A DNA stretch of 64,000 nt from positions 1 through 64,000 of the forward strand of contig VRVR01000041.1 of NCBI GenBank assembly GCA_009859145.1, given 5' to 3'. This document shows, in pieces, positions 3,380-61,100 of this stretch. A program made the position numbers and the translations under genes. This stretch comes from Andalucia godoyi And28. Its lineage: Eukaryota > Protista > Jakobida. The notes under the pieces are model-generated. The model was given only the letters and a program-made list of their open reading frames with translations. It had not been told where the DNA came from and did no database searches. Every line of letters begins with the position of its first letter. Positions within the stretch are counted from its first letter, which is position 1.

Positions 3380-3816
3380 CCCACATTTCCTTTTGTCGTC
3401 GTCGTCTTCTTCTTCTTCTTTTTCTTTTCTCCCTTTCTGTCGTGGCTTTTGTTGTCAACAATCAAGCACCGTTCATTTCAGTGCTTGCACTTGCCCGCGA
3501 GAGATTGCGTGTATGTGTTCTGTCCTTGAAGAGGACAAACTACCATCCTATACCGTGGTTTTGATTCATTACATAAAATACTGACACATACATTCAGCAC
3601 AGCAGCGTTCCGATAGAAATTGGAAAGGACACGCCTTCTTTGTTACTCTGCACTTCTAATCGATTTCTCGCACGCAAAATTGACAACAACGAATAAAACA
3701 AACAAACAAACACTATCCATTGAGAAAAACGGAGGAAGGGGAGGGAAAGAGAAGAGAGAAAAGAGAAAATCCGATATGATACGTGCTCGGCCGTCGTCTG
3801 CCTGGCGAAAACGGAT

Positions 3817-4401
3817 TCATGTGAGCAATCGATCGATTTCGGACTTGGCAACCTTTAATCGCTGCTGGAACCTCCTGCGAACTGCGTCTTCTTCATCACA
3901 AATCGTCTGCCAACTTTCCTTTTCCTTTGAAACGGATTTTGCGAGTTCTCCAATGACGTCCTTTGTTGAAGAACTCCGTTTTTCGAAAGCGTCGAGTCGA
4001 GCTTTCAGGGACGCCAATTCCAGATCCAGCGATGCCATGCTCTTGGAATGGTCAACCCGACACTTGTTAAACGACTCGACGTGGGCATGAAACGACTCTT
4101 TCAGCAGCTCGTCTGATTTGATCCGTGCAGATGATCGGTTCGAACCCGCTCCAGACCCGGATCCAGATCCACCACGAGCCCGCGCTCCACCAGCCATGCC
4201 TGGTTCTGCATGGTTGAGAGACCCACGATAGAAAACACCATCTGTACTGCTGCTTTCGTTGGTTGAACTGGAGTTCGTACGCGGACGTGTGTACGCGGCG
4301 GCGGCATGCGAGAAATCATGTGACTGATCGATGTGCGGAGGCGACGGGAAGTCCGGAGATCCAGTCGAGCTCGCCGACGAACTTGTGGACGTAAACGACA
4401 T
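3817..4401 (-). CDS. Hypothetical protein with Ser/Gly-rich N-terminus and C-terminal coiled coil
   Basis: ATG at 4401, 194-aa ORF with heptad-like LDLELASLKARLDAFEK. An upstream exon cannot be excluded. Confidence 0.6.
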   Translation of the reverse strand: MSFTSTSSSASSTGSPDFPSPPHIDQSHDFSHAAAAYTRPRTNSSSTNESSSTDGVFYRGSLNHAEPGMAGGARARGGSGSGSGAGSNRSSARIKSDELLKESFHAHVESFNKCRVDHSKSMASLDLELASLKARLDAFEKRSSSTKDVIGELAKSVSKEKESWQTICDEEDAVRRRFQQRLKVAKSEIDRLLT

Positions 4402-4948
4402 TGTATGTATGCAAGCACTGTATCCCGTGTGCTATGGTGTGAGCGTCAGCAACACAAAAGATGCGGAACCAGGACTGGAAACCAAAAGACCGCGGTGGGT
4501 CATTTCTTCCGCCAAATCAAAAACGGGATTCGACGAGTCCGGTTTTTTTCCCACCACCGCAGTGTTACTCCCCATCGCAGTTCTCGTTTTTGTCCAGTGT
4601 GGGCGCAGTAGATGAGCAAACGACGCTTGCATCGACGGTCGGTCTGCTCATCCATGTCTGTCATCGTTGACTGTCAAAAATCTGCTGTAGGCAAAATTCC
4701 GCAAAGGAAAACATAAAACGGTTCGCTTAAAACGTCGGGGGAAAACCTCCCGTTTTTTTACTCGTTTATCTATCTATCCAACTTTTTTGTAAAAATTCAA
4801 CATCTTTTTTTTTTTTTTGCGTGCGTTTGAAAAGGAAATTTTGATTGTGCGAATCTCTTCTTTTCCGGTGATACCTGAATGATGCTGTTCGTAGAATTCG
4901 CATCAGCAGTAGTAGCGTCTCATTCAGCTCCGATAAAACACCAGCAGC

Positions 4949-5551
4949 ATGGATCCAATTGAGAGGTTGTCAAAGGAACTGCAGGAAGAGTATGTAAAAA
5001 CGTCGAAGCAGGTTGAAACGTATTTCAGTTTGTTTTCCAAAGTTGACGACAGCCAACATCCGCAGCATCCGGCGTCCTTGGAGCTCTCGGAAGCGCAGAG
5101 ACCAGGTGGGATGGAAGAGGCACGGCGGCATCTGCAGAGGGAGTATGAAGATGCGTTGGTAACCCCAAGAATACCGGACATTCGAAAGGGCGTGGATTTT
5201 TCCAGCCAAGCTGTCGTGCCCGGCAGCACAGGCAGCATCCACGGTTCGTTCGAGACTTGGCTAGCTTCGGATCAGTTCGATGTGAAGCAGGTCGCCGATT
5301 CTATGGGAGCTGCGCAAGAGAAATACATGCAGGATCTGCAGAGTGTCCTGGGCGAGTCGAGAAAATGGAGATCGGCACTCTCTGACCCCAAGATGGACAA
5401 ACAACCGCTGCATAACGGCCGCGACGTCAGCTCGGTCCGCTATGCGCCATATCCCGAACAGCGGAATGCCTCGTTTCGCATGCGCAGCATCAGCGATCGC
5501 GAGCTCGATCTAAGCAACTTCGACATTTCGACGCTGAAAAGAATGCGATGA
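4949..5551 (+). CDS. Hypothetical protein, 200 aa, possibly nuclear
   Basis: ATG-initiated ORF with protein-like composition, RYAPY (PY-NLS-like) and a basic C-terminus KRMR. No family recognised. Confidence 0.65.
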   Translation: MDPIERLSKELQEEYVKTSKQVETYFSLFSKVDDSQHPQHPASLELSEAQRPGGMEEARRHLQREYEDALVTPRIPDIRKGVDFSSQAVVPGSTGSIHGSFETWLASDQFDVKQVADSMGAAQEKYMQDLQSVLGESRKWRSALSDPKMDKQPLHNGRDVSSVRYAPYPEQRNASFRMRSISDRELDLSNFDISTLKRMR

Positions 5552-5687
5552 ACCGGAAAATGCCCTGCCGATGAACGATCTTTCTGCTTTACCACTGGCT
5601 TCTTTTCTTATTTTTAATAATAAAATCTTTTTTTCTTCCCTCACCACCCCCTCCCCCCTTCTCTCCACGTCTCATTCGTTCTTCTAA

Positions 5688-7940
5688 TTAACGTCTGCGA
5701 ATGTGACGAGTCTTGCTCCTCTTCTTCTTTGGTCCATCTCGACTTTCCTTACGCTTGTTGGCCTTCATCTCCTTCATCAGCGTTCCGTCCATTCGCTTCA
5801 GTTTCTTTGGATTCTTGCTTTCAGAATTGGCCTTCTTGTACAGACTATCAAGAGCTCTCGACTTTTCGGATGCCGACATTTCGGAGTTCTCCAAAATCCC
5901 AGAGGTCTTATCTCGAAGCTTGTTCACTTCACGATTGAGATGATGGTGCTTTCGTGCTTTGGCCTCGGCAACCTTCTTGATGGGACGAGAGTTCAGTTCC
6001 TGGAACTTCGCCTTCTCTGCCAAAATCTCAGTCTTCGTTACCGGCGCAATTGCAGTCGAGTAAATTTCCTCCGAGTCACGGAACCACGCAGGAGCAGCGT
6101 CCAGATCGTCGAAGGCGTAGCGATTGTACGCCGCATCAATCATATCCATGCGATTCTTCTTCTTCAGCATTTTCTTACCGATCGCCATGATCATAGCCTT
6201 CTGATCAATCGGCACTTCCTCAAACTCGCCATCGGAGTCGTCGTCGTCTTTTGCAGCGGAAGGCACCTTGCGATTTCTCGAAATCACGCCACGGCCGTCG
6301 TCTTCTGAGTCACTTGCAGAGTCCGAATCGGAGTCAGACTCGCTGATTTCGTCCGAGTCCGCATCACTGTCGTTCTCTGCCTGTTCGCGCGACCGCTTTC
6401 GGGACACTGGCTGCTTGTCAGGAAGCGACATGTCTGCAACGTCAAAAAAGTTCGACGAAAACCACCTGTTGCTCGAAACTCCATTTGCAGCAGGCTTTGG
6501 CAATGTGGAAACGACTCCTGCAGAACCGTCTTCCAAAGGGGCAGGAGCGTTCATTTTTCTCGCTTTGTACATCTGATACATCCGATCAAGGTCGTTTTCC
6601 AAGTCATGGTAGTCCTCATCATCTGACTCCCACTCCAAAGGTTCCTCGTCGTCGGGAATACTGTCGTCCACATCCTCATCGGAAACAGGATCCAAATTGA
6701 CATTTCCCGATTTGGTCGCAGCAGCAAACAGTGAAGCATCTCCATATGTATCAAGGAGCAAAGACGTGTCCATATCATCATTGGTCATTCCTCCCAAACG
6801 GGCTTTCTGTTTCAATTTCTTGTCCCGCTCTCGCTTCTCCTCTTTTCTCTTTCTCTTCGCTTCTTTTTCACGGAATTCGCGCAGTTTTTCGTTGACTGAG
6901 TCAAGTGCATCCTCTTCTTCTTCCACCTCGATCTCTTCGACTGCACTGGCGGCTCTCGACTTCTTTGATGCCGCCGAGTCTTGCATCAGCTTCTTCGCTT
7001 TCAACCGGGACTTCAGCATCGCCTTGAGATCTCTTTTGCCGAGAACGCGGACGTCTTTGAACAACTCAAACAGCTCAGTCGAAAAAACAGAAGCATACTT
7101 CTCCTTCTCTTCATCAGAAACGCTAATCCGGTTTATCGTCGCCAAGAGGATTGCCGGAGAATCGTTCAACACAAAATCTGTAAATGAGACTTCCTTGAAA
7201 AGCAACGTCGCACCCTCCTCATATCCCTCTCGATTTCTTTTTTGTTTTTCATTGATTGTGTGTGGCTTGTTCTCCTCGACGTCTTCAAAGACATGTTTGA
7301 TGTCAAACAGCTTCGGATCAATTTTCTTCGGGCAAATGAAATCCTGGCAAACAACGAATATTTCCGCGGAAACTGCACGGGAAGACGCAGGCTTGGTCGC
7401 ATGCACTTTCTTGAACAATTGTTGGAACACCCAGATCAAAGAGTTGTAGTCCTTGGAGCGGAAGACCTTGGAGACAAACGTGCCTCCCGGTCGTAAGAAC
7501 TCACAGGCCAGCTTCAGAGAGCACAGCACAAGATCCGCCTGCGTGAATGCATCGCTCACCCAAGTTGTACCCATATTTGGCGCACCATCATGCAGAACGA
7601 CGTCTGCATTCCATGTCTTCAGCTCTTTGCGGATTGCTGTGCGACACTTTTCCGTCGTAATGTCCTCCACAAGCGTAATGACATTCTTGATTGGCTTGAT
7701 TGGAACAAGATCTACTCCGATAATAAGCGAACTCACAGGCATGTATTTCTGTGCAACTTGCATCCAACCACCAGGCGCCGCACAAAGATCGATGCACACA
7801 CGAGCAGAGTTCAGAAAGTCAAACTTCTTGTTCAGCTGGATCAGCTTAAAAGCGGAACGCGCTCGAAAACCTTGTTCTTTCGCAAGCACATAGTACTTAT
7901 CCAGACGCTCTTTTCCTGTCTTTTTCCCTTGTTTACCCAT
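5688..7940 (-). CDS. SPB1: Pre-rRNA 2'-O-ribose methyltransferase SPB1/FTSJ3
   Basis: MGKQGKK...RLDKYY...[33 protein letters not shown] and SRAVSAEIF motifs, plus the Spb1 C-terminal [13 protein letters not shown]. The true ATG is at 7940; the track's upstream extension is UTR. Confidence 0.97.
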
Positions 7941-28335: not shown

Positions 28336-28407
28336 TCGGGTGTAGTATAGCGGTTAGTATTCCCGCCTGTCACGCGGGCGACCCGGGTTCGATTCCCGGC
28401 ACTCGAG
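28336..28407 (+). tRNA. tRNA-Asp (GUC)
   Basis: Acceptor stem TCGGGTG/CACTCGA, D-arm TAGTATAGCGGTTAGTA, anticodon arm CCCGC-CTGTCAC-GCGGG, T-loop GGTTCGATTCC. Confidence 0.97.
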
Positions 28408-28668: not shown

Positions 28669-31600
28669 ATGCTTCGGAAGCCGGTGCTGTTTGAAGATTT
28701 GGTGGATTCTCCTTTGTGGGGAAGCTCATCTGGGGTGTTTCGAGTGAACCACTACGGAACCGATCAAGCGAGTCTGGATCAATCTCTTGCATCTCTGAGT
28801 TTGGATGATCCAATATGGGCGCTTGATTTTGCAAGTCCAACGGCTGTCCCATCGAGGGAGGATCAGGAGATGCACGTTCGCAGCTTGTTCTGCGTCGAGC
28901 CTCGGTATGACTACGAGCGGAACGGCGCTGCAGAAGTGGAGCACCCGACGGTGCTGGAAAGGTTCTTGGCTTCTGTCAAGTCGAGGTTTCCATGCATCAC
29001 AGCGATCCGCTTTTCAAACAGGGTGTATTTAGACAATCAAACGTTGTCCTTTGTGCTGCGCGAATTTGAATGTCTTCGTTACGTTTCGCTGCGTGACTGT
29101 TCATTCGGACAAGGATACTTTGCAAAGATCTACGCGAAGCCACGCAATCTGGAAATCATCGACTTGTCTGGATTCATGTGCGAAGAACAGCGCGACGAGT
29201 ACTGGCCAGACAGCGACGATGAGAGTGATGGTGCGAGTGTGCACACAAACAGCGATGATGACGACGAAGAAGGCGGCCTCTACTCGGAACAGTTTGGAAC
29301 GAATATCGTCGCAGCGTTTGCAAAGGCTTGCTCCGGTTGCGCGTCTGTGAAGCAGTTTTACATTACGAATTTGTGGTGTGGTTTGGCAGATGACGCCCTG
29401 ACGGCAATTGCGCAATCCTGCCCGTCCTTGGAGGTGCTGTTTGTGACGTCCGCGGACGAAGGCGCCGCCAGAGGTCATTTGGGTGTCACAGATGCGGGCA
29501 TTCATGACATTGCGGACAACTGCTGTCATTTGAAGTCATTGCTTGTTGCACATTCTACTATCCACGGAAGCTGCATCAAGGATCTGTTTGAATCGTGCCC
29601 CAAGCTGGAGTTCTTGGCGCTCTGGTCGTCGGGATTTACTGTCTATGACTCGGAACCGGGATGCGAAAAGGCGCAGTTGCTGAAACCTGCATTCACGAGC
29701 AGCTCATATCCGAGCATGCGGAATCTGAATCTGTATGTGGGCGGTGGGATTACTGCAAGGTTTCTCGCACGTGTACTCGATAAGTGTCCTAATCTAGAGC
29801 GGATTCTCGTTTTCTCCCACAGCCTGTCGTTGGAAGACGTGCCTTCCTTTTCGCAACTCTGCAATCTGCAAGAATTGTTCTTGCAGTCGTCTGCGATTCC
29901 GCCCTCGTTTTTGCAGCAACTGAGCCACTTAAAGAAGCTGCAACAAGTGATCATAGCCCCCATGTCCGATGCCAGCAAGGTGCCCACACCAGCACCTGCG
30001 CTGCTTGAGGATGCGTATATCGAGCTGCTTACGAATGGATCCGCGTGTCTTGCGGCCTTCAATGTCTCAAACTCAGTTCTAACGCCGCTGTTCTGGAAAG
30101 CCCTGGAGGCGAAAGGGGACATGAAGAGTCTGCACTGTTGGAACTGCAAAATCGACGAGGACTCTGCCGCCGCGCTGGAATCTTGCGCGCTGGCAGGGAT
30201 TTCGATTGTGATTAGTACACCACGTGTCGATCTTCTTCCGGGAAACTGGAAGTTTCTGGCGGCAAAGATGCGGAATCTGAAGTTTCAGCCAGCCTGCTCG
30301 CCCTCGGTTATCTCTGCAAGTACGTATGGAGTTCCCCTTGTCCGCACTGCGGAATCCCTGCCGACGTCGTACGATTTTGTGTCGTACAACCACGAAATTC
30401 AGCAGGTGAAGAATCTGCTCTATCATCTCAGGGAAAAGCTGAAGCCCAGTGAAAAGCTCGCCATTTCCTTTCGATTTCAACCTGGGCTGAGCGGTGTACT
30501 CGGAAGCGATGAGGACGGCGGAATGTTCTTGTTTGACGATCACAAGCTAGAAGCGTTCCTGTCAGAAGCCTGTGATGCTTTGTCGCCCCACGAAGTTGTT
30601 TGTTGTTGTGCTTTCAAGTTCCGCGGCTGTGTGTTCACATCGAAGGCCGTCCAGCTGATCACTGAATGCTGCAGCAAACTGCGATCTGCATCCCAGTCTG
30701 TCGTTGAAATCGGGTTTCCGTATTGCGAATTGACCAATGCAGCATTGTCCGCGATTCAGGGACTGCTTTCTGCTTACGAAAACGTTTCTAAGCTGTCTCT
30801 GGAATGCAATGCGTTTTCCGACGAATCAATGTCAAAGTTCATTACGCGTGTGGCGTCTTCTGCGGAATCGAGTGGCCTGAAGTTGCTCCAGATTGGTGGT
30901 CCTCAAATTTCAGATCAGTCCTTCCTTGCGTTCGTACATGCCGTTGAAGCTGGCCATTCCTTGTCCTTGTCTCTCTTCCAGCCTCAACTTTCTGATGCGG
31001 TCTTGGAGCAGTCGTTGCCCAGGTTGATGAAAGCCAGCGTCGAGTTCACAATCACCGCTCCAGCGCTCGCGTCTCCTGTGATTCGCGATATAATTCGATC
31101 GTTCAAAGAAGCCCAAGATGCAGGCCTTCTGTCACCGTTTCGAGTTCGTGTGTTCGTGCTGCCACTACACGAGAACGATGCATTTAACTCTCTGGGGAAA
31201 GAAGCGTTGTGTTTCGACGACATAGAACAAGTCAATAGCGGTATGATTCCTCTGCACATTTCGCTGCAGGCGCCGCACTTTGCGACGCTTGTTCAGTTAC
31301 TGGAGCTGCCTTTCTCAGAGTGGCCTGCCACTCCGAAGCAAATTGAAGACGGTTCGTTTCTGGTGTCCCGAGCCACGAAGAAAGTCCAGCTGCCTCTCGC
31401 AAGTGTCCATGATGGAGCGTCCAATGCGCCGGGCATGACAGGCATTCAAAGTGGACTTCAACAGCCACCTCTATTGGGAGGTTTCATTTTTGAAATCCAG
31501 CCCGGACTCTCGTTTCCCGGTGCGGAACCGAAAGCAGCTCCTTCTGCTTGCGCGACGTCTCTGGGTGGAAACATGGTGGCTGATGAAACTCGGAAGAGCA

Positions 31601-33903
31601 AGAAAAAGAAGCAATCTGGTGCGCAACCAGTGGATGTGACGGTCGTTAAGGAAGGGCAAGTGATGAATCAGCGTCTCTTTTTGGTGTCTGCTCCGCTTTC
31701 CGTACCCCACAGGGCTGGTGGCAGTGGCAGTGGCAGTGGCAGTGGCAGTGGCAGCGGAGACGGTGTCGATTCTGTTGCAGAACCGGTGTTATGTTCAAAA
31801 TTGCTGTGTGCGCCTGAGTGGAAGGGTTGGCTGGGTGCCCCGCAATGGCTGGAAAATCAAAAGACTTTCATAACGCTCGCGTCATCGCAAGCCTCTGAAA
31901 GTGGCTCGAGTACTTTGGCTAGTCTTTATGAAGTCGATTTTGCCTCCATGTCGATTATCAAAGAATATCCGACGTTCTCGACTCCTTACCACGTGGTGTC
32001 TGCTACGGATCGTGCTGTATTCTTCTTGTCATCTGGTACGATCTGCGGTATGGATCGCTCCGGCCGCATGCTGTTCTCCATGGACTTGAACATGGATTCG
32101 CTGAGTTCTTTGGAGACGTCCAACACAAATCACGATGCTGTGTTCATTGGATCGGACAGCAGTTTTTGTGAGTGGAGTCCCGAGTCTCAAAAGTCTGTGT
32201 CGACTGTGCGGCTCCAGGTTGTGTCGTGCAGGTGGGACTCTGCGAATACATGTGTCGTAGGCAGCTGGGACAAGGTCAAGGTGTATGATCGGCGATCCGG
32301 AAAGTTTACGTCCTCGTATTCTACCTGCGGTCAAATCCTGGACGTTCCCTTCGACGAACACACAGTTGTTGCCTGCGGAGGAGACTATTCTGGCTTGCAG
32401 CTGTTTGATCGGAGAATGAACAAGCTGCGTGAAAGCGTGGGACAGCTTACCGCTTGCAAGGGGTGGTACGACTCGTACCGTGCGGTAATTGGTGCTCAAG
32501 ATGGTCGGATCATTTACTACGATTGCAATTCGTCTGCGCGCTGGAAGCCAATCATCGAGGTTGCTGCCGACTCTTGGGTGTGGGGCCTGTCAGTGCACTC
32601 GGAATCGAAAACGGTGTTTGCGCAATCGGAGTCTTTGTATCAACTGGACTTCTCGGAATATCCGAATGCGGTGTTTCAACGTCCTGCCGATTTCGCGTTT
32701 CCGGATTTTGACGTCCTGGCCTCAATGGACAAGGTGAAGCGCACCATTGGAAAGCACGCAAGCACAGGGCGTGCCGAGAAGCTAGTCGCGGACCTAAAGG
32801 CGCTATTTGCAAGTGGAAAGGAGATTTACGAAGAGGCGTACTGCGATTCCGTCGTGGCGGCTCTGGAAAAGGACCACGTCCATGTACTCACAGCGCTGTC
32901 CGTCGAGTTTCCAGTCGACTTCTCACCTTCCAGTATTCTGGAAGCGCACTTTGCGAACTGGAATCCGAAAACGAGTCTGCTGGCCTATGCTGTGACTGTG
33001 AAGGCACGTAAGTGCGTTCCGTTTCTGCTAGCCCACGGTGCGCGATACGTGAACCGTGAAGCGATCGAGCCACCAGCAGACCGCGATGCTGCGCCTCGAC
33101 GCCTGCTCTCGTCCCGCAGCACATGCAATCCGCTGCTACTGGTTGCAAAGGAACTTGGCATGTTGTGGGAGCATCGCAGTGAGTGGGTGGAAATTATGTG
33201 GGGTCTATGGAAGGTAGCGGGCTGCCCTCTGTCTTCTGTTGAAGTCATGTTTGGGAGATCTTTGAGCATTTTATCGTTCCTCTCACTTGGACTGGGAGCG
33301 GAGCAGCGGCTACTGGATCTTGTCCTAGCATTATTGGATGCGGACGATGTCCCTGTTACTGTTGACACGCTTTGTCGTTACTGCAATTCAGCGTCTCTTG
33401 ACATTTTTCAGAAGATTGTCGAGAAGCTCGGAGGCGTCGACGCGACGAAGTCCAAGATTGCCTCTCCATGCGATTTGTTCATTCCTGCTTTAACTCAGCA
33501 CGACTGGAGCATGGTTCAATTTCTTTGCAAGGACTTTGGGCTTGATCGTGATGCTTTCTATCAGTATCGCCCGGGAGAAGCAGATGGGTACTACTTGCTA
33601 ACAGTTGCTGTGAACAACGTGGATGCTCTGAAGGATATGTTGGATCCGTCATACGCCGGAAAGCCTGCGAACCCGAATGTCCACCGAAACGGATACACCG
33701 CGCTGCATGCTGCCGTGAATGTTCGCAATCTGGATTGTGTGAAGTGTCTGCTGCGCCATCCAGGAATCGATCTGACCGTTGTGAATGCGCAAGGCAACAC
33801 CGCGCTGCAACTCGCACGCGCACTTCCAAACGATGCAAATGCCTCCGAGATTCTCGCGGCACTGCAGAACGCATACAAGGAAAAGTGTCTCCCAACAGAC
33901 TGA
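28669..33903 (+). CDS. 1744-aa multidomain protein: LRR + WD40-like propeller + ankyrin repeats
   Basis: F-box/AMN1-type LRRs (IAQSCPSLEVL, IADNCCHLKSL, LFESCPKLEFL), WD-like blades (GSWDKVKVYDRR, GLQLFDRR, GAQDGRIIYYD) and ankyrins (NGYTALHAAV...VNAQGNTALQLA). Confidence 0.85.
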   Translation: MLRKPVLFEDLVDSPLWGSSSGVFRVNHYGTDQASLDQSLASLSLDDPIWALDFASPTAVPSREDQEMHVRSLFCVEPRYDYERNGAAEVEHPTVLERFLASVKSRFPCITAIRFSNRVYLDNQTLSFVLREFECLRYVSLRDCSFGQGYFAKIYAKPRNLEIIDLSGFMCEEQRDEYWPDSDDESDGASVHTNSDDDDEEGGLYSEQFGTNIVAAFAKACSGCASVKQFYITNLWCGLADDALTAIAQSCPSLEVLFVTSADEGAARGHLGVTDAGIHDIADNCCHLKSLLVAHSTIHGSCIKDLFESCPKLEFLALWSSGFTVYDSEPGCEKAQLLKPAFTSSSYPSMRNLNLYVGGGITARFLARVLDKCPNLERILVFSHSLSLEDVPSFSQLCNLQELFLQSSAIPPSFLQQLSHLKKLQQVIIAPMSDASKVPTPAPALLEDAYIELLTNGSACLAAFNVSNSVLTPLFWKALEAKGDMKSLHCWNCKIDEDSAAALESCALAGISIVISTPRVDLLPGNWKFLAAKMRNLKFQPACSPSVISASTYGVPLVRTAESLPTSYDFVSYNHEIQQVKNLLYHLREKLKPSEKLAISFRFQPGLSGVLGSDEDGGMFLFDDHKLEAFLSEACDALSPHEVVCCCAFKFRGCVFTSKAVQLITECCSKLRSASQSVVEIGFPYCELTNAALSAIQGLLSAYENVSKLSLECNAFSDESMSKFITRVASSAESSGLKLLQIGGPQISDQSFLAFVHAVEAGHSLSLSLFQPQLSDAVLEQSLPRLMKASVEFTITAPALASPVIRDIIRSFKEAQDAGLLSPFRVRVFVLPLHENDAFNSLGKEALCFDDIEQVNSGMIPLHISLQAPHFATLVQLLELPFSEWPATPKQIEDGSFLVSRATKKVQLPLASVHDGASNAPGMTGIQSGLQQPPLLGGFIFEIQPGLSFPGAEPKAAPSACATSLGGNMVADETRKSKKKKQSGAQPVDVTVVKEGQVMNQRLFLVSAPLSVPHRAGGSGSGSGSGSGSGDGVDSVAEPVLCSKLLCAPEWKGWLGAPQWLENQKTFITLASSQASESGSSTLASLYEVDFASMSIIKEYPTFSTPYHVVSATDRAVFFLSSGTICGMDRSGRMLFSMDLNMDSLSSLETSNTNHDAVFIGSDSSFCEWSPESQKSVSTVRLQVVSCRWDSANTCVVGSWDKVKVYDRRSGKFTSSYSTCGQILDVPFDEHTVVACGGDYSGLQLFDRRMNKLRESVGQLTACKGWYDSYRAVIGAQDGRIIYYDCNSSARWKPIIEVAADSWVWGLSVHSESKTVFAQSESLYQLDFSEYPNAVFQRPADFAFPDFDVLASMDKVKRTIGKHASTGRAEKLVADLKALFASGKEIYEEAYCDSVVAALEKDHVHVLTALSVEFPVDFSPSSILEAHFANWNPKTSLLAYAVTVKARKCVPFLLAHGARYVNREAIEPPADRDAAPRRLLSSRSTCNPLLLVAKELGMLWEHRSEWVEIMWGLWKVAGCPLSSVEVMFGRSLSILSFLSLGLGAEQRLLDLVLALLDADDVPVTVDTLCRYCNSASLDIFQKIVEKLGGVDATKSKIASPCDLFIPALTQHDWSMVQFLCKDFGLDRDAFYQYRPGEADGYYLLTVAVNNVDALKDMLDPSYAGKPANPNVHRNGYTALHAAVNVRNLDCVKCLLRHPGIDLTVVNAQGNTALQLARALPNDANASEILAALQNAYKEKCLPTD

Positions 33904-54163: not shown

Positions 54164-55072
54164 ATGGATGAGCTATCGCCGCAGTACCGGGAGTTTCTGA
54201 CAAAGTATTTATCGCATGCACGGTCGATGCGGGACCGGCATCTGCGGGAAGTGGACCTCGTGTTTGCAGAGGCGCGTGTGTCGCCTGCGACAACGACGGG
54301 TGCCCAGCTCGAGTCGATTGCGGCTGTGGTTCGCGGCGTTGTGATGAAGGAGCTCGCGAACATGGCGCATGCGAATGCCGAGCTCTTACGCATCGTGCTC
54401 AAAGAAGCGGATGCGTGTCGCGTGTCTCTCGCACTCGACATGCGCACGTTTGAAGACTCGACAGCCGTTCAGGCAATCGCTGCTGCGGACCCCTTCTATG
54501 TACCACCCACTCTCCCTCCTTCTTCTTCTTCTTCTTCTTCTTCTTCTTCTTCTTCTTCCTCGGGTGGCGGAAAGCAGACCAAGCTGGCTCCTTTGGGTGG
54601 TGCAGGTGGAGGTGGTGGGAGTGATCCAGTAGCTGAAAATGCATTGCTGCGGGACAAGCTGACGAAGCTGCAGCTTTCTCATACGCAGCTGATGAAGGAA
54701 CGGGCGGCGCTGCAGGACGAGTTTGTTGCGTCTCATTCACAGGCTGCGGACAGTGCGCGCCGAGTTACGCATCTTGAGGCGGAAAACAGCCTGCTGCTGC
54801 AGAAACTCGCGATGCACGGCGACAAGGAAAGGGACGCCGCAGCGGTGGAGGCCGAGTATGCGAGACAGCAGCGAGACGCACAGACGCAAGAAGAGGGACT
54901 TGAGGACAGGTTGAAGTCTGCACAGAAACGAATCGCCGAGCTGGAATCCGAGCTTGGAAAGCGCGTGTCGGACACCGCGCAGTTCCAAAACCTGAAAAAG
55001 ATGATGGAAGCCAAGAACGCAGAGCTGCGAAAACTCCGCAGTGAACTCGGAAAAGGAAATCCCGACGACTGA
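54164..55072 (+). CDS. LZTFL1: Leucine zipper transcription factor-like 1 (BBS17), BBSome trafficking regulator
   Basis: KYLSHARSMRDRHLREVD, ELANMAHANAELLRIVLKEAD and C-terminal TAQFQNLKKMMEAKNAELRKLR align with LZTFL1. Confidence 0.85.
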   Translation: MDELSPQYREFLTKYLSHARSMRDRHLREVDLVFAEARVSPATTTGAQLESIAAVVRGVVMKELANMAHANAELLRIVLKEADACRVSLALDMRTFEDSTAVQAIAAADPFYVPPTLPPSSSSSSSSSSSSSSGGGKQTKLAPLGGAGGGGGSDPVAENALLRDKLTKLQLSHTQLMKERAALQDEFVASHSQAADSARRVTHLEAENSLLLQKLAMHGDKERDAAAVEAEYARQQRDAQTQEEGLEDRLKSAQKRIAELESELGKRVSDTAQFQNLKKMMEAKNAELRKLRSELGKGNPDD

Positions 55073-55129: not shown

Positions 55130-55477
55130 TTACGACTTGTTTTCCTTGTTATTGGCATTGACGGGGTTTGATTCGTCTTCAACCCCCGTCTGCGTCATCA
55201 GGTCGCCGATGGACCGCTCAAGATCGTCGATTCGCGAACCCATTTCGTCAATTCGAGATACAATGGTGTCGGACATTTCCTGGAACCGTGCTTGCTATCA
55301 CTCCCATCAACATCAAACATATACCCATATCAGTATCAGTACCCAACACTGTCAATAACATGCATGGAATAGGAGAGGGAAAATGCATACCATTTGCTGC
55401 AAAAGATTCTGGACAAACTCGGTAAGTTCCTGAGTTCCTTGCGGTTGATTCGAAGCATCGGCCTTGTTCGACGACAT
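55130..55477 (-). CDS. HSBP1: Heat shock factor-binding protein 1; exons 55477-55391 and 55294-55130 (missed by the ORF track)
   Basis: [14 protein letters not shown]|[33 protein letters not shown], with a phase-0 intron GTATGC...GATAG and TAA at 55130-55132. Confidence 0.93.
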
Positions 55478-56283
55478 GATTATTTGATTCTTGAATTTGG
55501 TGCGCTTGACTCGGTTACACAGAGGAAAAGAAAAAGGCCAGAAAAGGGAAGAAAAGAAGGAACAATAAGTAGACCGGGGTTGGCATACAAACAGTACGCT
55601 GAGGGGAAAACCAGGATGAATAACGTATACAGATGCACGGTAAGACATGTACGCTAAAAACTACACGGATGCTTTCATCTGGCTTTTTGTTACAGCAGGT
55701 GAAATGAGCACCCCCCTTCGAAAACCATTCGCTCGGAAAGATCGAACTGAGTCGCAGCATAGATTCTCCAGGTTCTCGAATCTCTGCCACCACCCACCAT
55801 CCACCATCCACCATCCACCATACATCGTCCTTGGGAAATGATCGTGCGTGTAAAGTACATCTGCGGGGGTGCGCTCATTCGTGGCATAGCGGATTGTTCT
55901 GCATAAAGGATTGTTTTCCTGTTTTCTATTGCGCCGCCTGCTGCGACGGAACGGGCAGATATTCCCTTTTTGGTACTTGTTCGTCACGAATCCCGACAAA
56001 ATAGGAAATTTTATGATGGACGGATGCATCTGCAGCGTTTTGAAGATTTCCCGATGCGTTACCACCTGCACGAGATCCGTACTGGCCGCACTGCGTATAT
56101 AAGCTGAGAATCCTGGAAAAACAGGTTTTTTTTCTTCTTGTTTCGTTCTCTTTCTTTTTTTTTTCCTTCTGTCGTTTCTCTTCACATTGCTCCCGAAAAC
56201 ACATCCAGATTTCCATCAGCATTTTGCATCCTGCAAAGAAAAAGAAACGACAACAAAAACCGACAACGAAAACGACAACAGGC

Positions 56284-57069
56284 ATGACTCGCAACTTAGC
56301 AGCTATCAAAACCGCCGACCTCTCCAAAGTCAAGCGCCGCGTCATCAAGGAGCTGAACTGGACCTCCGAGTATGCAGAATCAGCCGTACAAGAGTACCGC
56401 AAGTTCATCTGTCTCGCCGCACACGGATTCCCCGCAGTTCCCTGCAGAGACGTCGACGAAGTCTGGCACAACCACATCCTCTTCACCCAGGACTACACCA
56501 CTTTCTGCGACGACATCTTTGGCTTCTACCTCCACCACGATCCGATGGACAGTTCGGAAACTGTTGTCCCCGTGCAGCAGAAGAATGCCACCGGCGCCGT
56601 TGAAAACGTCACCGGCAGTCCGCACGACGCATACTCGCAAACATTGGAAATGTACGTCAAGGTCTTTGGAACCAAGCCAGATGCCATGTGGGGCTCTCAC
56701 TCTGCAGATACTGCTGCTCTCTGCTTTGCACGCAACACTGACAGCAATGCGGAAAAGGCTGCTCTCTGCTTTGCACGCAACACTGACAGCAGTGCGGAAA
56801 AGGCTGCTCTCTGCTTTGCACGCAACACTGACAGCAGTGCGGAAAAGGCTGCTCTCTGCTTTGCACGCAACACTGACAGCAGTGCGGAAAAGGTCGCAAT
56901 CTGTATCCCTCTACACCAGACTGCCAGCGCCACCAAAGAGCGCACTCTCAGAGTCGACACTCAAATCGAAGACCTGCCACCAATGTTCGTCAAGAACGCG
57001 TCACTGCATGCGAATGTCGGGTCTGAAACGCCGCATTTCACCCACAATGCACCGCTGTCCGTTCAGTAG
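56284..57069 (+). CDS. GRDP-like (PF07173/DUF1399-type) domain protein with a C-terminal tandem Cys-peptide array
   Basis: EYRKFICL...VPCRDVDEVWHNHILFTQDYTTFCDDIFGFYLHHDP and YSQTLEMYVKVFGTKPDAMW, followed by (AALCFARNTDS[N/S]AEK)x4. First ATG at 56284. Confidence 0.8.
   Translation: MTRNLAAIKTADLSKVKRRVIKELNWTSEYAESAVQEYRKFICLAAHGFPAVPCRDVDEVWHNHILFTQDYTTFCDDIFGFYLHHDPMDSSETVVPVQQKNATGAVENVTGSPHDAYSQTLEMYVKVFGTKPDAMWGSHSADTAALCFARNTDSNAEKAALCFARNTDSSAEKAALCFARNTDSSAEKAALCFARNTDSSAEKVAICIPLHQTASATKERTLRVDTQIEDLPPMFVKNASLHANVGSETPHFTHNAPLSVQ
56713..56892 (+). repeat. In-frame 45-nt tandem repeat x4, plus a degenerate fifth unit at 56893-56937
   Basis: GCTGCTCTCTGCTTTGCACGCAACACTGACAGCAGTGCGGAAAAG x4, with only one substitution (AAT/AGT in unit 1). 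Confidence 0.97.
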
Positions 57070-57720
57070 GCAGCGTAAAGTACTGCAGATCAAAAAGAAG
57101 ACGAAAAATACAAACGTACGAATAAAAAACCTCGAGACACGATTAACAGCTTTGTGCATCACCGCTGACCATCAAACAATACGATTTCCCTACCGTAGCC
57201 AAGTCCAGAATTTCTTTCATTCAACACTGTCCTTATTTTCTATTTGTTTGTTTTATCATCGAACCCTCAAGTAGCACCTCTTCATCAAAGACAAGACATC
57301 GCATGGCTCCAAAGAGGAGACCTTCCCAACAAACGCAAAACCGGCCATGCCTGAAGATGCCGAGACCCAAGAAACCTGTTGATTCTCTCTCGTCGGAGGC
57401 GGAGAGCAAGAAGAAGCGATGACCCTTTGATGTCAAGCAATCTGCATTGAAGAGTTTGTGCTCGCCCCCAATTAAAGAAGCATAAAATCATGTGGCTTCG
57501 ATCTGCCATCGGTGACAGCTTAGCCGATGATGAATCAGTAATGGATTCATTTCGACGACAACACGAAAAAGCCAAGTTTCTGGCATCACTTGATGCACCT
57601 GAAACGATATTTCCTCTTTATGTTTTCCTTTTGTTTTTCCATCTTTTATAAAATTTTCTTTTGTCTGTTTAACTGTTTTTGTCGAGTTATACTTTATTTT
57701 GGTTGTGGGCTATTGGAGAG

Positions 57721-59166: not shown

Positions 59167-60645
59167 TTAGAAATTCCATTTGGTGCGAGCCAGGGCTACA
59201 CCGCGCAGAATCCACTTGGAAAAGGTGACGACTCCTGCGGCGATTGCGCAAATGCGTACGAAAAAGTGGGAGAAAGGCATGTGTTCGACGGACCTTACGA
59301 GCTTGAGGGGAGAGATTTCAAAGACAAAGTAGATTCCTGGGAGCATCTGTCGTCTCCGCAAATCAAACTCGGTGGTGTGCTCCGTGACCGAATACACGTA
59401 ACTCGCATGGACGACGTTATCGTGCCTGTCCACCTGCTCAACAGGTACAACCTTGATGAAGTACTTGAAAGCCGCCACATGGTGCTGTGTATGTATGGCC
59501 TTTGTGGAGCCGCCGAGTAGATTCGACATTTTTTCTTCTTCCTTGGTGATCAGCACATTGTCAAAGAGCATTTTTCTCTTGATTCCTGAGCTTGCAGAGC
59601 AGGCGCCAACACCAGACCCGTGGACATACGCTTCGTCTCCATCTTGGCTCGGCTCGCAGAACACAAGTCTCTCGATGCGGTGGGTAGCATTGAACTCGGA
59701 GGCCTCTGCAAAGTCAAAGTTGTGCACATGGCGAGCCATTCCGCCTGCATGATGCTCAAACGAAGCGCCCGGCGCAAAATGAAAATTGCCAGACACGCGA
59801 GCAAGATCGACGTAGCCTGCAAAGTTGCACCCGGCCGTTCGCTTGGTCATTTCCACTGCACACTGGGCAATCGTCGATAAACCAGGAACATGCCAGTTGC
59901 GCTTGGCATACGCAGCAAGAACTTCGTCACACGTGTTGCAACATCCGGTATCAGCACCATAGCAAGAACCGCATGCCTCCTTTTCATGCCCGTGTCCGTG
60001 TTCGTGCCCGCTGTCCTTATCCTTGCCGTGGTCGTCGTTGTGGTCGTCGTTGTGGTCGTCGTTGTGGTCGTCGTTGTTGTGCGCATCACGACCATTGGCG
60101 CCTTTGGGAAGCTTGGGAGTCATAATGACCCGTTCCAACCCATATTCTGGTGCTCGCGAGCCGTCGCTCAGCAGAGGTGTTCGATAGATGTGGTCCGCAA
60201 TCGCGTTGTGCTGCTCGCCGGTGATGTCGAGGACATCGAGGGTGAGTTTCGAGCACGGAATGGACGGAAACGTAATGTTGAACTCCATGCGCAGCGGCTG
60301 CAGGAACATCGAACTCGACGTGCCAGAGCGTCCGGAGTTGCCAGATGCAGCTGAAGCATCGGAATTAACACGCAGTTCATCATGGACAACCGATGAAAGG
60401 TATGCAGAAAGCTCCACATACGTCAGCACAACCAGCAGAAACAGCGTAATATACGTCGCATACGATCCTGCAGTCGAGTGCTCTAACACCACCACATCCT
60501 TCGTCTTTGGAAACACGTCCACTCGTCGTAGTATTTTTGCATACGGAGTGTTCGATAGCTCCGCAGCACGACTCAGCAGCACAGACGACACCGGCCTTCT
60601 TTGACGCGCCAACGCCGACCCGGACATTTCTCCACCATCTGCCAT
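59167..60645 (-). CDS. ERGIC3: ER-Golgi intermediate compartment protein 3 (Erv46 family)
   Basis: LRRVDVFPKT + TM, CGSCYGA, CCNTCDEV..AY...W, GCNFAG...SGNFHFAPG, PGIYFVFEISP + TM. First ATG at 60645; the frame is open upstream to 60723, so an upstream exon is possible. Confidence 0.92.
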   Translation of the reverse strand: MADGGEMSGSALARQRRPVSSVLLSRAAELSNTPYAKILRRVDVFPKTKDVVVLEHSTAGSYATYITLFLLVVLTYVELSAYLSSVVHDELRVNSDASAASGNSGRSGTSSSMFLQPLRMEFNITFPSIPCSKLTLDVLDITGEQHNAIADHIYRTPLLSDGSRAPEYGLERVIMTPKLPKGANGRDAHNNDDHNDDHNDDHNDDHGKDKDSGHEHGHGHEKEACGSCYGADTGCCNTCDEVLAAYAKRNWHVPGLSTIAQCAVEMTKRTAGCNFAGYVDLARVSGNFHFAPGASFEHHAGGMARHVHNFDFAEASEFNATHRIERLVFCEPSQDGDEAYVHGSGVGACSASSGIKRKMLFDNVLITKEEEKMSNLLGGSTKAIHTQHHVAAFKYFIKVVPVEQVDRHDNVVHASYVYSVTEHTTEFDLRRRQMLPGIYFVFEISPLKLVRSVEHMPFSHFFVRICAIAAGVVTFSKWILRGVALARTKWNF

Positions 60646-61100
60646 TCCCTCTTCCACTTCCTCTTCCTCTTCCTCTTCCTCTTCCTCTTCTTCTTCGACC
60701 TGTGATCCTGCAATATCCTCCAAAACAAAAAATATAAAAATGAAAAGAGGCAGTTCCCGCTATTAATCGACGATATTCGCTATATTTTTAATATCTTAAA
60801 AAATGATTATGAATTGAATTACATAAAAATAAAACATGGAAAATAAATGAGCAGTCACCTTTTACAGCCGGTGAGCAGGACGGTGGTTGACAGTTGTCGA
60901 TCATGCAGTTCAAGAGCGTTTCCACTTGGATTACAGTACAGTAGATGTGCAGTACGACAATTCTCTCTTCTTTCCCCCTTTTAATTTTACTTTTATTATT
61001 ATTTATTATTTTATTATATATATTTTTTTTCTTTTGGTTATGTTTTTATTTCGTTTTATGTCTTTGGGAAACGATGAAGAGAGAGTGTGTCGCGTAAAGA

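Follow-up and report, generated by a model that had tools for sequence, protein, structure and literature searches.

Short core peptides encoded in tandem, with spacers that end in basic residues, are found in the precursors of dikaritins and cyanobactins, which are free of any enzyme domain and depend on particular proteases (Kex2, PatA/G), the fungal precursors also bearing a signal peptide. In the fungal borosins (OphMA-type), the precursor itself bears the enzyme, with the core peptide at its C terminus; the enzyme is an S-adenosylmethionine-dependent N-methyltransferase, the core is single, and the chemistry is not directed at Cys. Burpitides depend on a small copper-dependent BURP domain that acts on repeated cores, which are carried by the same protein in fused pathways and by a separately encoded precursor in split ones (PMC11253845). 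NHLP is an established leader family of RiPPs (peptides made on ribosomes and modified after translation) with hypervariable Cys-rich cores (PMC2887384), and TIGR04222 proteins with C-terminal Cys/Gly/Ser tails, often encoded beside MNIO genes, have been proposed as MNIO oxidase substrates whose N-terminal part aids biogenesis (PMC12452194). Here we analyze a gene of the jakobid Andalucia godoyi And28, found in the first 64,000 nucleotides of the forward strand of contig VRVR01000041.1 (assembly GCA_009859145.1; this stretch is hereafter the window), that encodes a domain related to the plant glycine-rich domain proteins (GRDPs) joined to a tandem array of Cys-containing units. We regard an enzyme–substrate (or binder–ligand) module acting on Cys as the best reading of this arrangement, and give the window protein about an even chance of being an enzyme–substrate fusion.

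The coordinates of the gene and its parts are collected in Table 1. A preliminary description of the locus had proposed a compact His-rich domain followed by four copies and a fifth variant of a Cys-containing peptide, and translation bears this out: DEVWHNH occupies residues 58 to 64, LHHDP residues 83 to 87, and FGTKPDAMW ends at residue 136, each where it had been placed. The four copies and the variant were recovered by translation, and the four copies also by Tandem Repeats Finder (56713–56893, period 45, 4.0 copies, 99% matches, score 355); every unit contains, as described, a single Cys followed by a hydrophobic residue and a terminal Lys. The four near-identical units comprise AALCFARNTDSNAEK once and AALCFARNTDSSAEK three times, differing by one base only (AAT versus AGT), and the fifth unit, VAICIPLHQTASATK, shares roughly half of its bases with the consensus unit; its ICIPL resembles the CIPT, CVPS, and ACLTLP units of relatives. 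Frames on both strands stay open across the repeat because its period is a multiple of three (56372–57274, forward; 56697–56960, reverse), and the only frame supported over the repeat is the one that continues from the conserved domain. The identical 261-aa sequence is present in the public protein collection, and the domain is single copy within the window (tblastn).

The window protein is a member of the GRDP-like/UCP032817-like superfamily, to which plant GRDP1 and GRDP2 (DUF1399, PF07173) also belong. Its precomputed Pfam family, like that of essentially all of its relatives, is PF27765.1 (UCP032817-like). The assignment to PF07173/DUF1399 in the preliminary description stands at the level of the superfamily, through PF27765, the motif, and the fold, but not at the level of the PF07173 profile, for which the full protein scores 18.4 bits and the domain alone 20.1 bits against a gathering cut-off of 22.7, with a match spanning only profile positions 90 to 141 of 143 (the last third). 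Since PF07173 is matched by 34 of 41 close short relatives (best E 3e-12) while the window protein falls below the cut-off, its link to PF07173 is transitive. Apart from this subthreshold match, a Pfam scan of the window protein returned one noise match, and neither BURP nor a methyltransferase. With residues 1 to 143 as the query, phmmer detected 8431 cluster representatives at E ≤ 1e-3, of which 1174 reached E ≤ 1e-10, and the family is found in bacteria, giant viruses, protists, fungi, and plants. The suggestion that the system is specific to protists did not survive: it also occurs in bacteria, giant viruses, fungi, and plants. The giant viruses encoding the domain are Harvfovirus, Gaeavirus, Terrestrivirus, and Orpheovirus, and the contig encoding one further relative (P0131, locus L002), which carries kinase, RING, and helicase genes as well as numerous orphan open reading frames (ORFs), has a viral or eukaryotic look. 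Carriage by giant viruses, Legionellales, and Chlamydiae points to gene exchange in amoeba-associated communities.

Conservation was assessed from alignments of 41 to 117 sequences. Residues Y38, D58, W61, H62, H64, L66, Y71, and H85 are invariant or nearly so, T68, C75, G80, H84, and P87 are kept in at least 90% of 115 to 117 sequences, and the superfamily motif D-x-x-W-H-x-H-x-L-x-T-x-x-Y ... G-x-x-x-H-H-x-P is present in the window protein. AlphaFold2 gives a predicted local distance difference test score (pLDDT) of about 85 to 98 over roughly residues 1 to 143 and a disordered tail. Foldseek found no relative in the PDB (best E 0.67), and sequence and profile searches of the PDB likewise found no solved relative of the domain; in BFVD, Foldseek matched a Harvfovirus "Glycine-rich domain-containing protein-like" (E 1.4e-5, target TM 0.72) and one protein each of Gaeavirus and Terrestrivirus. 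Judged by their conservation, the invariant polar residues D58, H62, H64, and H85 (with H84, Y71, and C75) look like an active site more than a passive scaffold, and their predicted placement on two consecutive helices and the next loop is compatible with a single site, although it does not prove one.

The tail was surveyed in the 150 closest relatives, where a tail was defined as at least 10 residues after the last domain. By this definition a tail is present in 120 of the 150, and 106 of the 120 contain Cys, 100 of them at least two. Cys accounts for 7.1% of tail residues versus 1.7% of domain residues; where a segment follows a complete domain, it contains Cys in 71 of 86 cases, the first Cys then lying a median of 8 residues past the end of the domain, and a Cys-rich segment of its own likewise trails the first domain of several two-domain proteins. 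A variable Cys tail after FG..P...W, for which the preliminary description had suggested looking, is thus general in the family, so homologs without Cys tails, the first finding that it had named as contrary to its proposal, are not the rule. This family-wide regularity is strong and was previously unremarked. In 15 tails, a word that includes Cys but is more than a mix of Cys, Gly, and Ser occurs three or more times, and tandem Cys units are found in many lineages, including LCQPTG (four copies), LCVPSG (three), PKCGAPxG (five), SDCK (ten), and AGCGNCHGK (a variable number). The closest eukaryote-like relatives, one of them from the fungus Hyaloraphidium curvatum, are 41 to 52% identical to the window protein in the domain, and an A-hydrophobic-C-hydrophobic context is common to the closest relatives (aalCfar, aalClrr, qalCiqp, salCfaa, aagCvpCfg). 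Cys residues are closely spaced in 64 of 102 tails and exclusively isolated in 29, that of the window protein included. Some relatives (P0019, P0021, P0041) have signal-peptide-like N termini and KK spacers. The Cys/Gly/Ser tail of another, short relative, P0030, has a weak match, below the cut-off, to TIGR03601, the model for heterocycloanthracin/sonorensin bacteriocins (E 0.0016), a compositional resemblance to thiazole/oxazole-modified core peptides.

Selection on the Cys-containing core can be followed in the array of one relative. A further homolog search with full-length eukaryote-like queries, partly overwhelmed by low-complexity matches, returned only 20 proteins, and in three of them the core of the window units, A-A-(L/F/Y)-C-(F/A)-A, recurs with other periods: the P0262 tail consists of AAFCAA plus six variable residues in 10 units of period 12, the P0267 tail of AAYCAA in 6 units of period 12, and the P0265 tail of (S/A)FCAA in 5 units of period 7 to 9. 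Over the ten units of P0262, all six core codons occur in two or three synonymous forms; the central A-F-C-A is never altered, each outer Ala is altered only once among the units, and variation is free at the six spacer positions. Purifying selection on a Cys-centered hexapeptide is thereby directly evidenced in P0262, which makes up for the near-identity of the window copies, which is uninformative in this respect.

In bacteria, the domain and the Cys-containing peptide are in part apparently encoded by separate genes. A scan that took one genome per bacterial species yielded 35 loci, from Chlamydiae, a metagenome-assembled genome labeled Verrucomicrobiae, Myxococcota, Legionellales, Nostocales, Moraxella, Lysobacter, bacteria of the candidate phyla radiation, and others, and together with the loci collected earlier these contain 41 distinct domain genes. 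Tail Cys residues are encoded by 21 of the 41, those of Nostocales lying in two units of sAC(L/M/I)T(L/I)P. A small ORF that lies upstream on the same strand, no more than 200 bp away, and has at least two Cys in its last 15 aa precedes 9 of the 20 genes that encode no tail Cys versus 2 of the 21 Cys-tailed genes (small-ORF background 10.7%; binomial p = 3.8e-4; Fisher p = 0.012). The clearest cases are two kinds of locus (L007/L010 and L009), at which a gene of 99 to 102 aa runs into the beginning of the domain gene, overlapping it (TAATG in L009), and encodes a protein of the NHLP leader family, with TIGR03793 scores of 57.3 and 49.3 bits (cut-off 50.9) and Pfam NHase_alpha scores of 35 to 41 bits (cut-off 27.2). 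The leader of these precursors ends in the motif ELSEMELEKVACG or LSDEALEKMASG and is followed by a short core, ETQEAKCCPKSPVS or EPQAAKCCPT (...AKCCP...). The two NHLP-paired loci come from different phyla, and because their flanking genes differ completely, the NHLP gene and the domain gene form a conserved two-gene unit. Marine Legionellales encode a 50-aa ORF ending in ANCSGHCQSGTCMAE about 5 bp upstream of the domain gene, called as a gene in five of six contigs, and further upstream ORFs end in GCGCTCGC, HCGCNHKK, and NCYINGCSK. The analogy drawn in the preliminary description with enzymes that act on repeated cores thus gains independent support from the small Cys-ended ORFs, two of them NHLP, beside tail-less bacterial members of the family.

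A Pfam census of 108 genes flanking the domain gene at 33 bacterial loci listed 25 families, including every family that recurs in at least two loci, and radical-SAM, YcaO, LanM, MNIO, and C39 transporter families are absent from the list; no MNIO or other maturase gene was found among the window ORFs either. Several features of the bacterial neighborhoods are recorded here as side observations. In Nostocales (L018, L024, L027, L034, L036, L037, and L039; about 3450–6350, reverse strand), the Cys-tailed gene is convergent to a gene for a protein of about 770 aa with NB-ARC/AAA_16 and TPR domains and an N-terminal helix-turn-helix (HTH) of the sigma-70-region-4/LuxR type (unseen in the L027 and L034 ORFs as called), which has the look of a STAND-type regulator; a NACHT–HEAT gene also adjoins the gene for P0086 (L001). 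The possibility that the sACLTLP tails and the NB-ARC–TPR proteins are amyloid-signaling pairs was considered and dropped, since the NB-ARC N terminus is an HTH and there is no matching motif. Paralogous clusters of domain genes occur at L006 (5001–8828), L019 (2878–3905), and L027 (2878–4042); one megabase-scale contig carries three copies of the domain gene with a DDE transposase between them, and in cyanobacterial tandem pairs the CaaX-like C terminus ...AACGVL is confined to the second copy. Genes for a TonB-dependent receptor and TonB are divergent from the precursor and domain gene pair of the marine Legionellales (L044–L049; 165–2204, reverse strand), and EgtD-like, EgtB-like, pyridine-nucleotide disulfide oxidoreductase, and FTR1 genes lie near that of P0086 (L001; 920–3198 and 4430–5824).

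We propose that the gene product is a cytosolic two-part protein, a 143-aa His-rich, mostly helical domain followed by a disordered five-unit Cys tail, in which the domain would recognize the A-A-L-C-F-A hexapeptide and, in the tail attached to it, act on the Cys thiol. A metal-dependent active site would probably be formed by the invariant Asp/His/His/His/His/Tyr(/Cys) set. The window protein would be the fused form of the system, and a bacterial domain gene with a separate Cys-peptide gene the split form. The architecture, the Cys tail across the family, the core selection in a relative, the complementarity of cis and trans arrangements, and the NHLP pairing are observed, as is the lack of any other conserved partner enzyme. 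The two-part module, a His-rich domain with an unstructured Cys-centered peptide attached or encoded beside it, is thus kept across kingdoms, and the most economical view is that the domain binds and most likely modifies the Cys units. The best-supported, if unproven, reading of the window gene is that of an enzyme joined to repeated cores of its own. The domain might bind metal and catalyze, for example, an oxidation, a cross-link, or heterocycle formation at Cys, and the units might then be cut out as free peptides or be kept as a modified tail; the single Lys at the unit ends is weak evidence for processing sites. A truncated AlphaFold model containing the domain and two units gains two short strands that the full-length model lacks, one at H84-H85-D-P and one at C147-F-A-R, and their joint appearance is a low-confidence hint of docking of the tail on the domain.

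Several points weigh against this interpretation. The fold has no solved relative, so a catalytic precedent cannot be borrowed, and searches of the literature on the DUF1399/PF07173/UCP032817/GRDP-like domain turned up plant phenotypes only, with no biochemical or RiPP study. The tail is predicted to be disordered, and the pLDDT of the modeled docking strands is only about 46 to 53. The closely spaced Cys found in the majority of tails are CxxC-like and, as sequences, would also suit plain metal binding. Plant GRDPs, at 700 to 800 aa, are unlikely peptide precursors (PMC4299439). Eleven of the 20 bacterial members without a Cys tail also have no obvious Cys ORF nearby, and some of the nine upstream ORFs that were counted are short and may be spurious. 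The four window units, 99% identical in DNA, are themselves uninformative on selection and may reflect a recent expansion.

One alternative would make the Cys tail a working appendage, a flexible arm for metal or redox binding (metallochaperone-like, a sensor, or a buffer) that captures a metal or carries electrons or sulfur to the His-rich site and is neither covalently modified nor released. Cys pairs no more than four residues apart characterize the 64 tails counted above, many tails are rich in Cys, Gly, and His (CGNCHGK, CNGCNGTCGG), like metal-binding sequences, plant GRDPs retain a Gly/Cys tail on large proteins, and metal- or thiol-themed genes adjoin some family members (the TonB-dependent receptor and TonB in Legionellales; the EgtB/EgtD-like, disulfide oxidoreductase, and FTR1 genes near P0086). 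Such an arm fits poorly with the window tail and 28 others, in which isolated Cys residues 7 to 15 apart, with Ala or hydrophobic flanks, offer poor chelating geometry; with selection on the whole hexapeptide AAFCAA rather than on Cys alone; and with a split partner that is a leader-bearing NHLP precursor with a cleavage-type motif and thus resembles a substrate. We consider a metal-binding arm unlikely, though it is the alternative to be taken most seriously.

Alternatively, the domain could be noncatalytic, a docking, leader, or chaperone module presenting the Cys tail to a separate enzyme, as has been proposed for TIGR04222 membrane proteins and MNIO (DUF692) oxidases (PMC12452194); NHLP and Nif11 are precedents for long, enzyme-derived leaders. 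The preliminary description had named TIGR04222 among the profiles to be checked. An NCBIfam scan of the window protein gave no match at E ≤ 1, TIGR04222 (cut-off 43 bits) included, and ten relatives were likewise without a TIGR04222 match, so membership of the window protein and these relatives in that family, which is a separate membrane domain, was rejected. TIGR04222 was seen only as a fusion partner in a Lysobacter protein of 566 aa (L041), which combines a GRDP-like domain (residues 105 to 223), a TIGR04222 domain (residues 276 to 510), and a GGGCGGGCGGCGGS tail; its TIGR04222 score of 106.8 bits serves as the positive control for the model. This fusion ties the GRDP-like and TIGR04222 families together and, with its GGCGGC tail, speaks for a presenting role. 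Against such a role are the window protein's lack of a TIGR04222 domain, the absence of MNIO or any other maturase from the 25 listed neighbor families of the 33 bacterial loci and from the window, and the invariant His/Asp/Tyr/Cys residues, which are atypical of passive leaders. In addition, the NHLP partners already bear leaders of their own, so that a second leader-like protein would be redundant. We rate a purely presenting domain as quite improbable.

Least probable, and very doubtful in our estimation, is that the Cys residues are S-acylation (lipid anchor), disulfide, or structural sites in a recent, largely neutral low-complexity expansion that has no dedicated chemistry: the 99% DNA identity of the four units, as expected from recent unequal crossover, and the disordered tail, whose Ala-rich units of 12 to 15 aa could be helical (a weak helix at residues 156 to 164 in the truncated model), would suit it, but it leaves the split bacterial arrangement unexplained and is at odds with the tail Cys enrichment in both bacteria and eukaryotes, the Cys retained in the diverged fifth unit, and the core AA(F/Y/L)C(A/F)A, kept through synonymous codon change in arrays of differing period. 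Each of the three alternatives is made less likely, though still conceivable, by the conserved hexapeptide with its isolated Cys, by the NHLP precursors as partners, and by the absence of another enzyme that is conserved.

A broader proposal can be made only tentatively, and we think it more apt to fail than to hold: GRDP-like/UCP032817-like (DUF1399) proteins would be cross-kingdom Cys-directed maturation enzymes, fused to their substrates in protists, fungi, and plants and split from them in Chlamydiae, Verrucomicrobia-like bacteria, and Legionellales, where they would act on NHLP-type or leaderless Cys peptides, and the window protein would be an autocatalytic multicore precursor with the core A-A-L-C-F-A. 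In plants, the phenotypes tied to DUF1399/GRDP proteins extend to stress tolerance, growth, and seed size, and the family, for all its thousands of cluster representatives, is without a solved structure. The four-part pattern of a Cys tail in cis, a Cys-peptide gene in trans, selection on a hexapeptide, and pairing with RiPP precursors leads to a specific hypothesis that is cheap to test. If it is true, DUF1399 would gain its first biochemical function, as a new enzyme family with possibly new Cys chemistry in peptide natural products; a new RiPP-like class would include a rare self-contained eukaryotic example, and the "glycine-rich domain" of plant GRDPs would be reinterpreted as a substrate tail.

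Table 1. Positions in the window of the A. godoyi GRDP-like gene and of the parts of its product
Feature	Position	Strand	Remarks
Complete ORF, 261 aa + stop: GRDP-like domain, then Cys-repeat tail	56284..57069	+	ATG at 56284, stop at 57067-57069
Folded GRDP-like/UCP032817-like domain, aa 1-143, predicted six helices and a beta-hairpin	56284..56712	+	AlphaFold2, PF27765
Motif D58-E-V-W61-H62-N-H64	56455..56475	+	D58, W61, H62, H64 invariant in 115-117 aligned relatives
Cys75 within the domain	56506..56508	+	kept in at least 90% of relatives
H84-H85-D-P87 (HH-x-P motif)	56533..56544	+	H85 invariant; H84 and P87 in at least 90%
Four tandem 45-bp units, AALCFARNTDS(N/S)AEK	56713..56892	+	Tandem Repeats Finder; Cys codons at 56722, 56767, 56812, 56857
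Diverged fifth unit, VAICIPLHQTASATK	56893..56937	+	Cys and terminal Lys retained
Cys-free C-terminal 43 aa, predicted disordered	56938..57066	+	pLDDT mostly below 50

The genes around this locus are ordinary eukaryotic housekeeping genes on both strands, including those for Leo1, an ERGIC/ERV protein, HSBP1, a pseudouridine synthase, RSN1, Spb1/FtsJ, Thg1, frataxin, a mitochondrial carrier, and a GH15 enzyme, and no gene set resembling a biosynthetic cluster was found among the window ORFs. The G+C content of the window is about 50%, and the housekeeping gene content on two strands indicates a eukaryotic host with a compact genome. The HSBP1 gene (55130–55648, reverse strand) is apparently split by a short intron: the ORF at 55130–55276 matches only profile positions 21 to 51, and the N terminus lies in a separate upstream ORF within 55352–55648. 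The genome therefore has at least some introns. The ERGIC/ERV-family protein (59167–60723, reverse strand) has an unusual His/Asp-rich insert, NNDDHNDDHNDDHNDDHGKDKDSGHEHGHGHE, between its two conserved domains and an N-terminal poly-Glu run; a leucine-zipper neighbor (54164–55072) has a run of 13 Ser followed by a Gly-rich stretch, and an intergenic (CCACCAT)x5 microsatellite lies upstream of the repeat-protein gene (55787–55821). Low-complexity expansions are common in this genome. A tRNA-Asp (GTC) gene (28336–28407, forward strand), just upstream of a 1744-aa ORF (28669–33903), is the sole Rfam/ARAGORN match in the 64 kb.

Compared with known systems, the window protein shares its tandem units with the dikaritin and cyanobactin precursors but has no signal peptide and only a single Lys at the unit ends. 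TIGR04222/bufferin-type MNIO substrates resemble it in their disordered C-terminal Cys/Gly/Ser tails as proposed targets of Cys chemistry (PMC12452194); it differs from them in having no match to the model, no membrane segments, and no MNIO gene in the window. With NHLP and Nif11 precursors it shares a design in which a long and conserved N-terminal part gives way to a C terminus that is hypervariable and rich in Cys, yet the domain is not NHLP-like: its invariant His/Asp set is kept, whereas the nitrile hydratase metal ligands are gone from NHLP leaders (PMC2887384). Among members of its own superfamily, plant GRDP2 ends in a Gly-rich stretch with interspersed Cys, of consensus [CG]GGGCGG[GC] (PMC4299439). 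Plant GRDPs differ from the window protein in their length of 700 to 800 aa, in an additional N-terminal part covered by the Pfam model, in a central region, and in a Gly-rich tail with closely spaced Cys in place of 15-aa single-Cys units, and they are known from physiological phenotypes only. As in the borosins, a domain is fused to C-terminal peptide sequence in a eukaryote, but no methyltransferase domain is present in the window protein. The BURP domain (PF03181) is unrelated in fold and family, with no BURP match in the window protein; it cross-links Tyr or Trp rather than Cys, its cores lie N-terminal to the domain in secreted plant proteins, whereas the window repeats are C-terminal, and its activity has been demonstrated, whereas that of the window domain is a proposal. 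The resemblance to burpitides is thus one of design only, in which the window protein corresponds to the fused arrangement and the bacterial loci are candidates for the split one.

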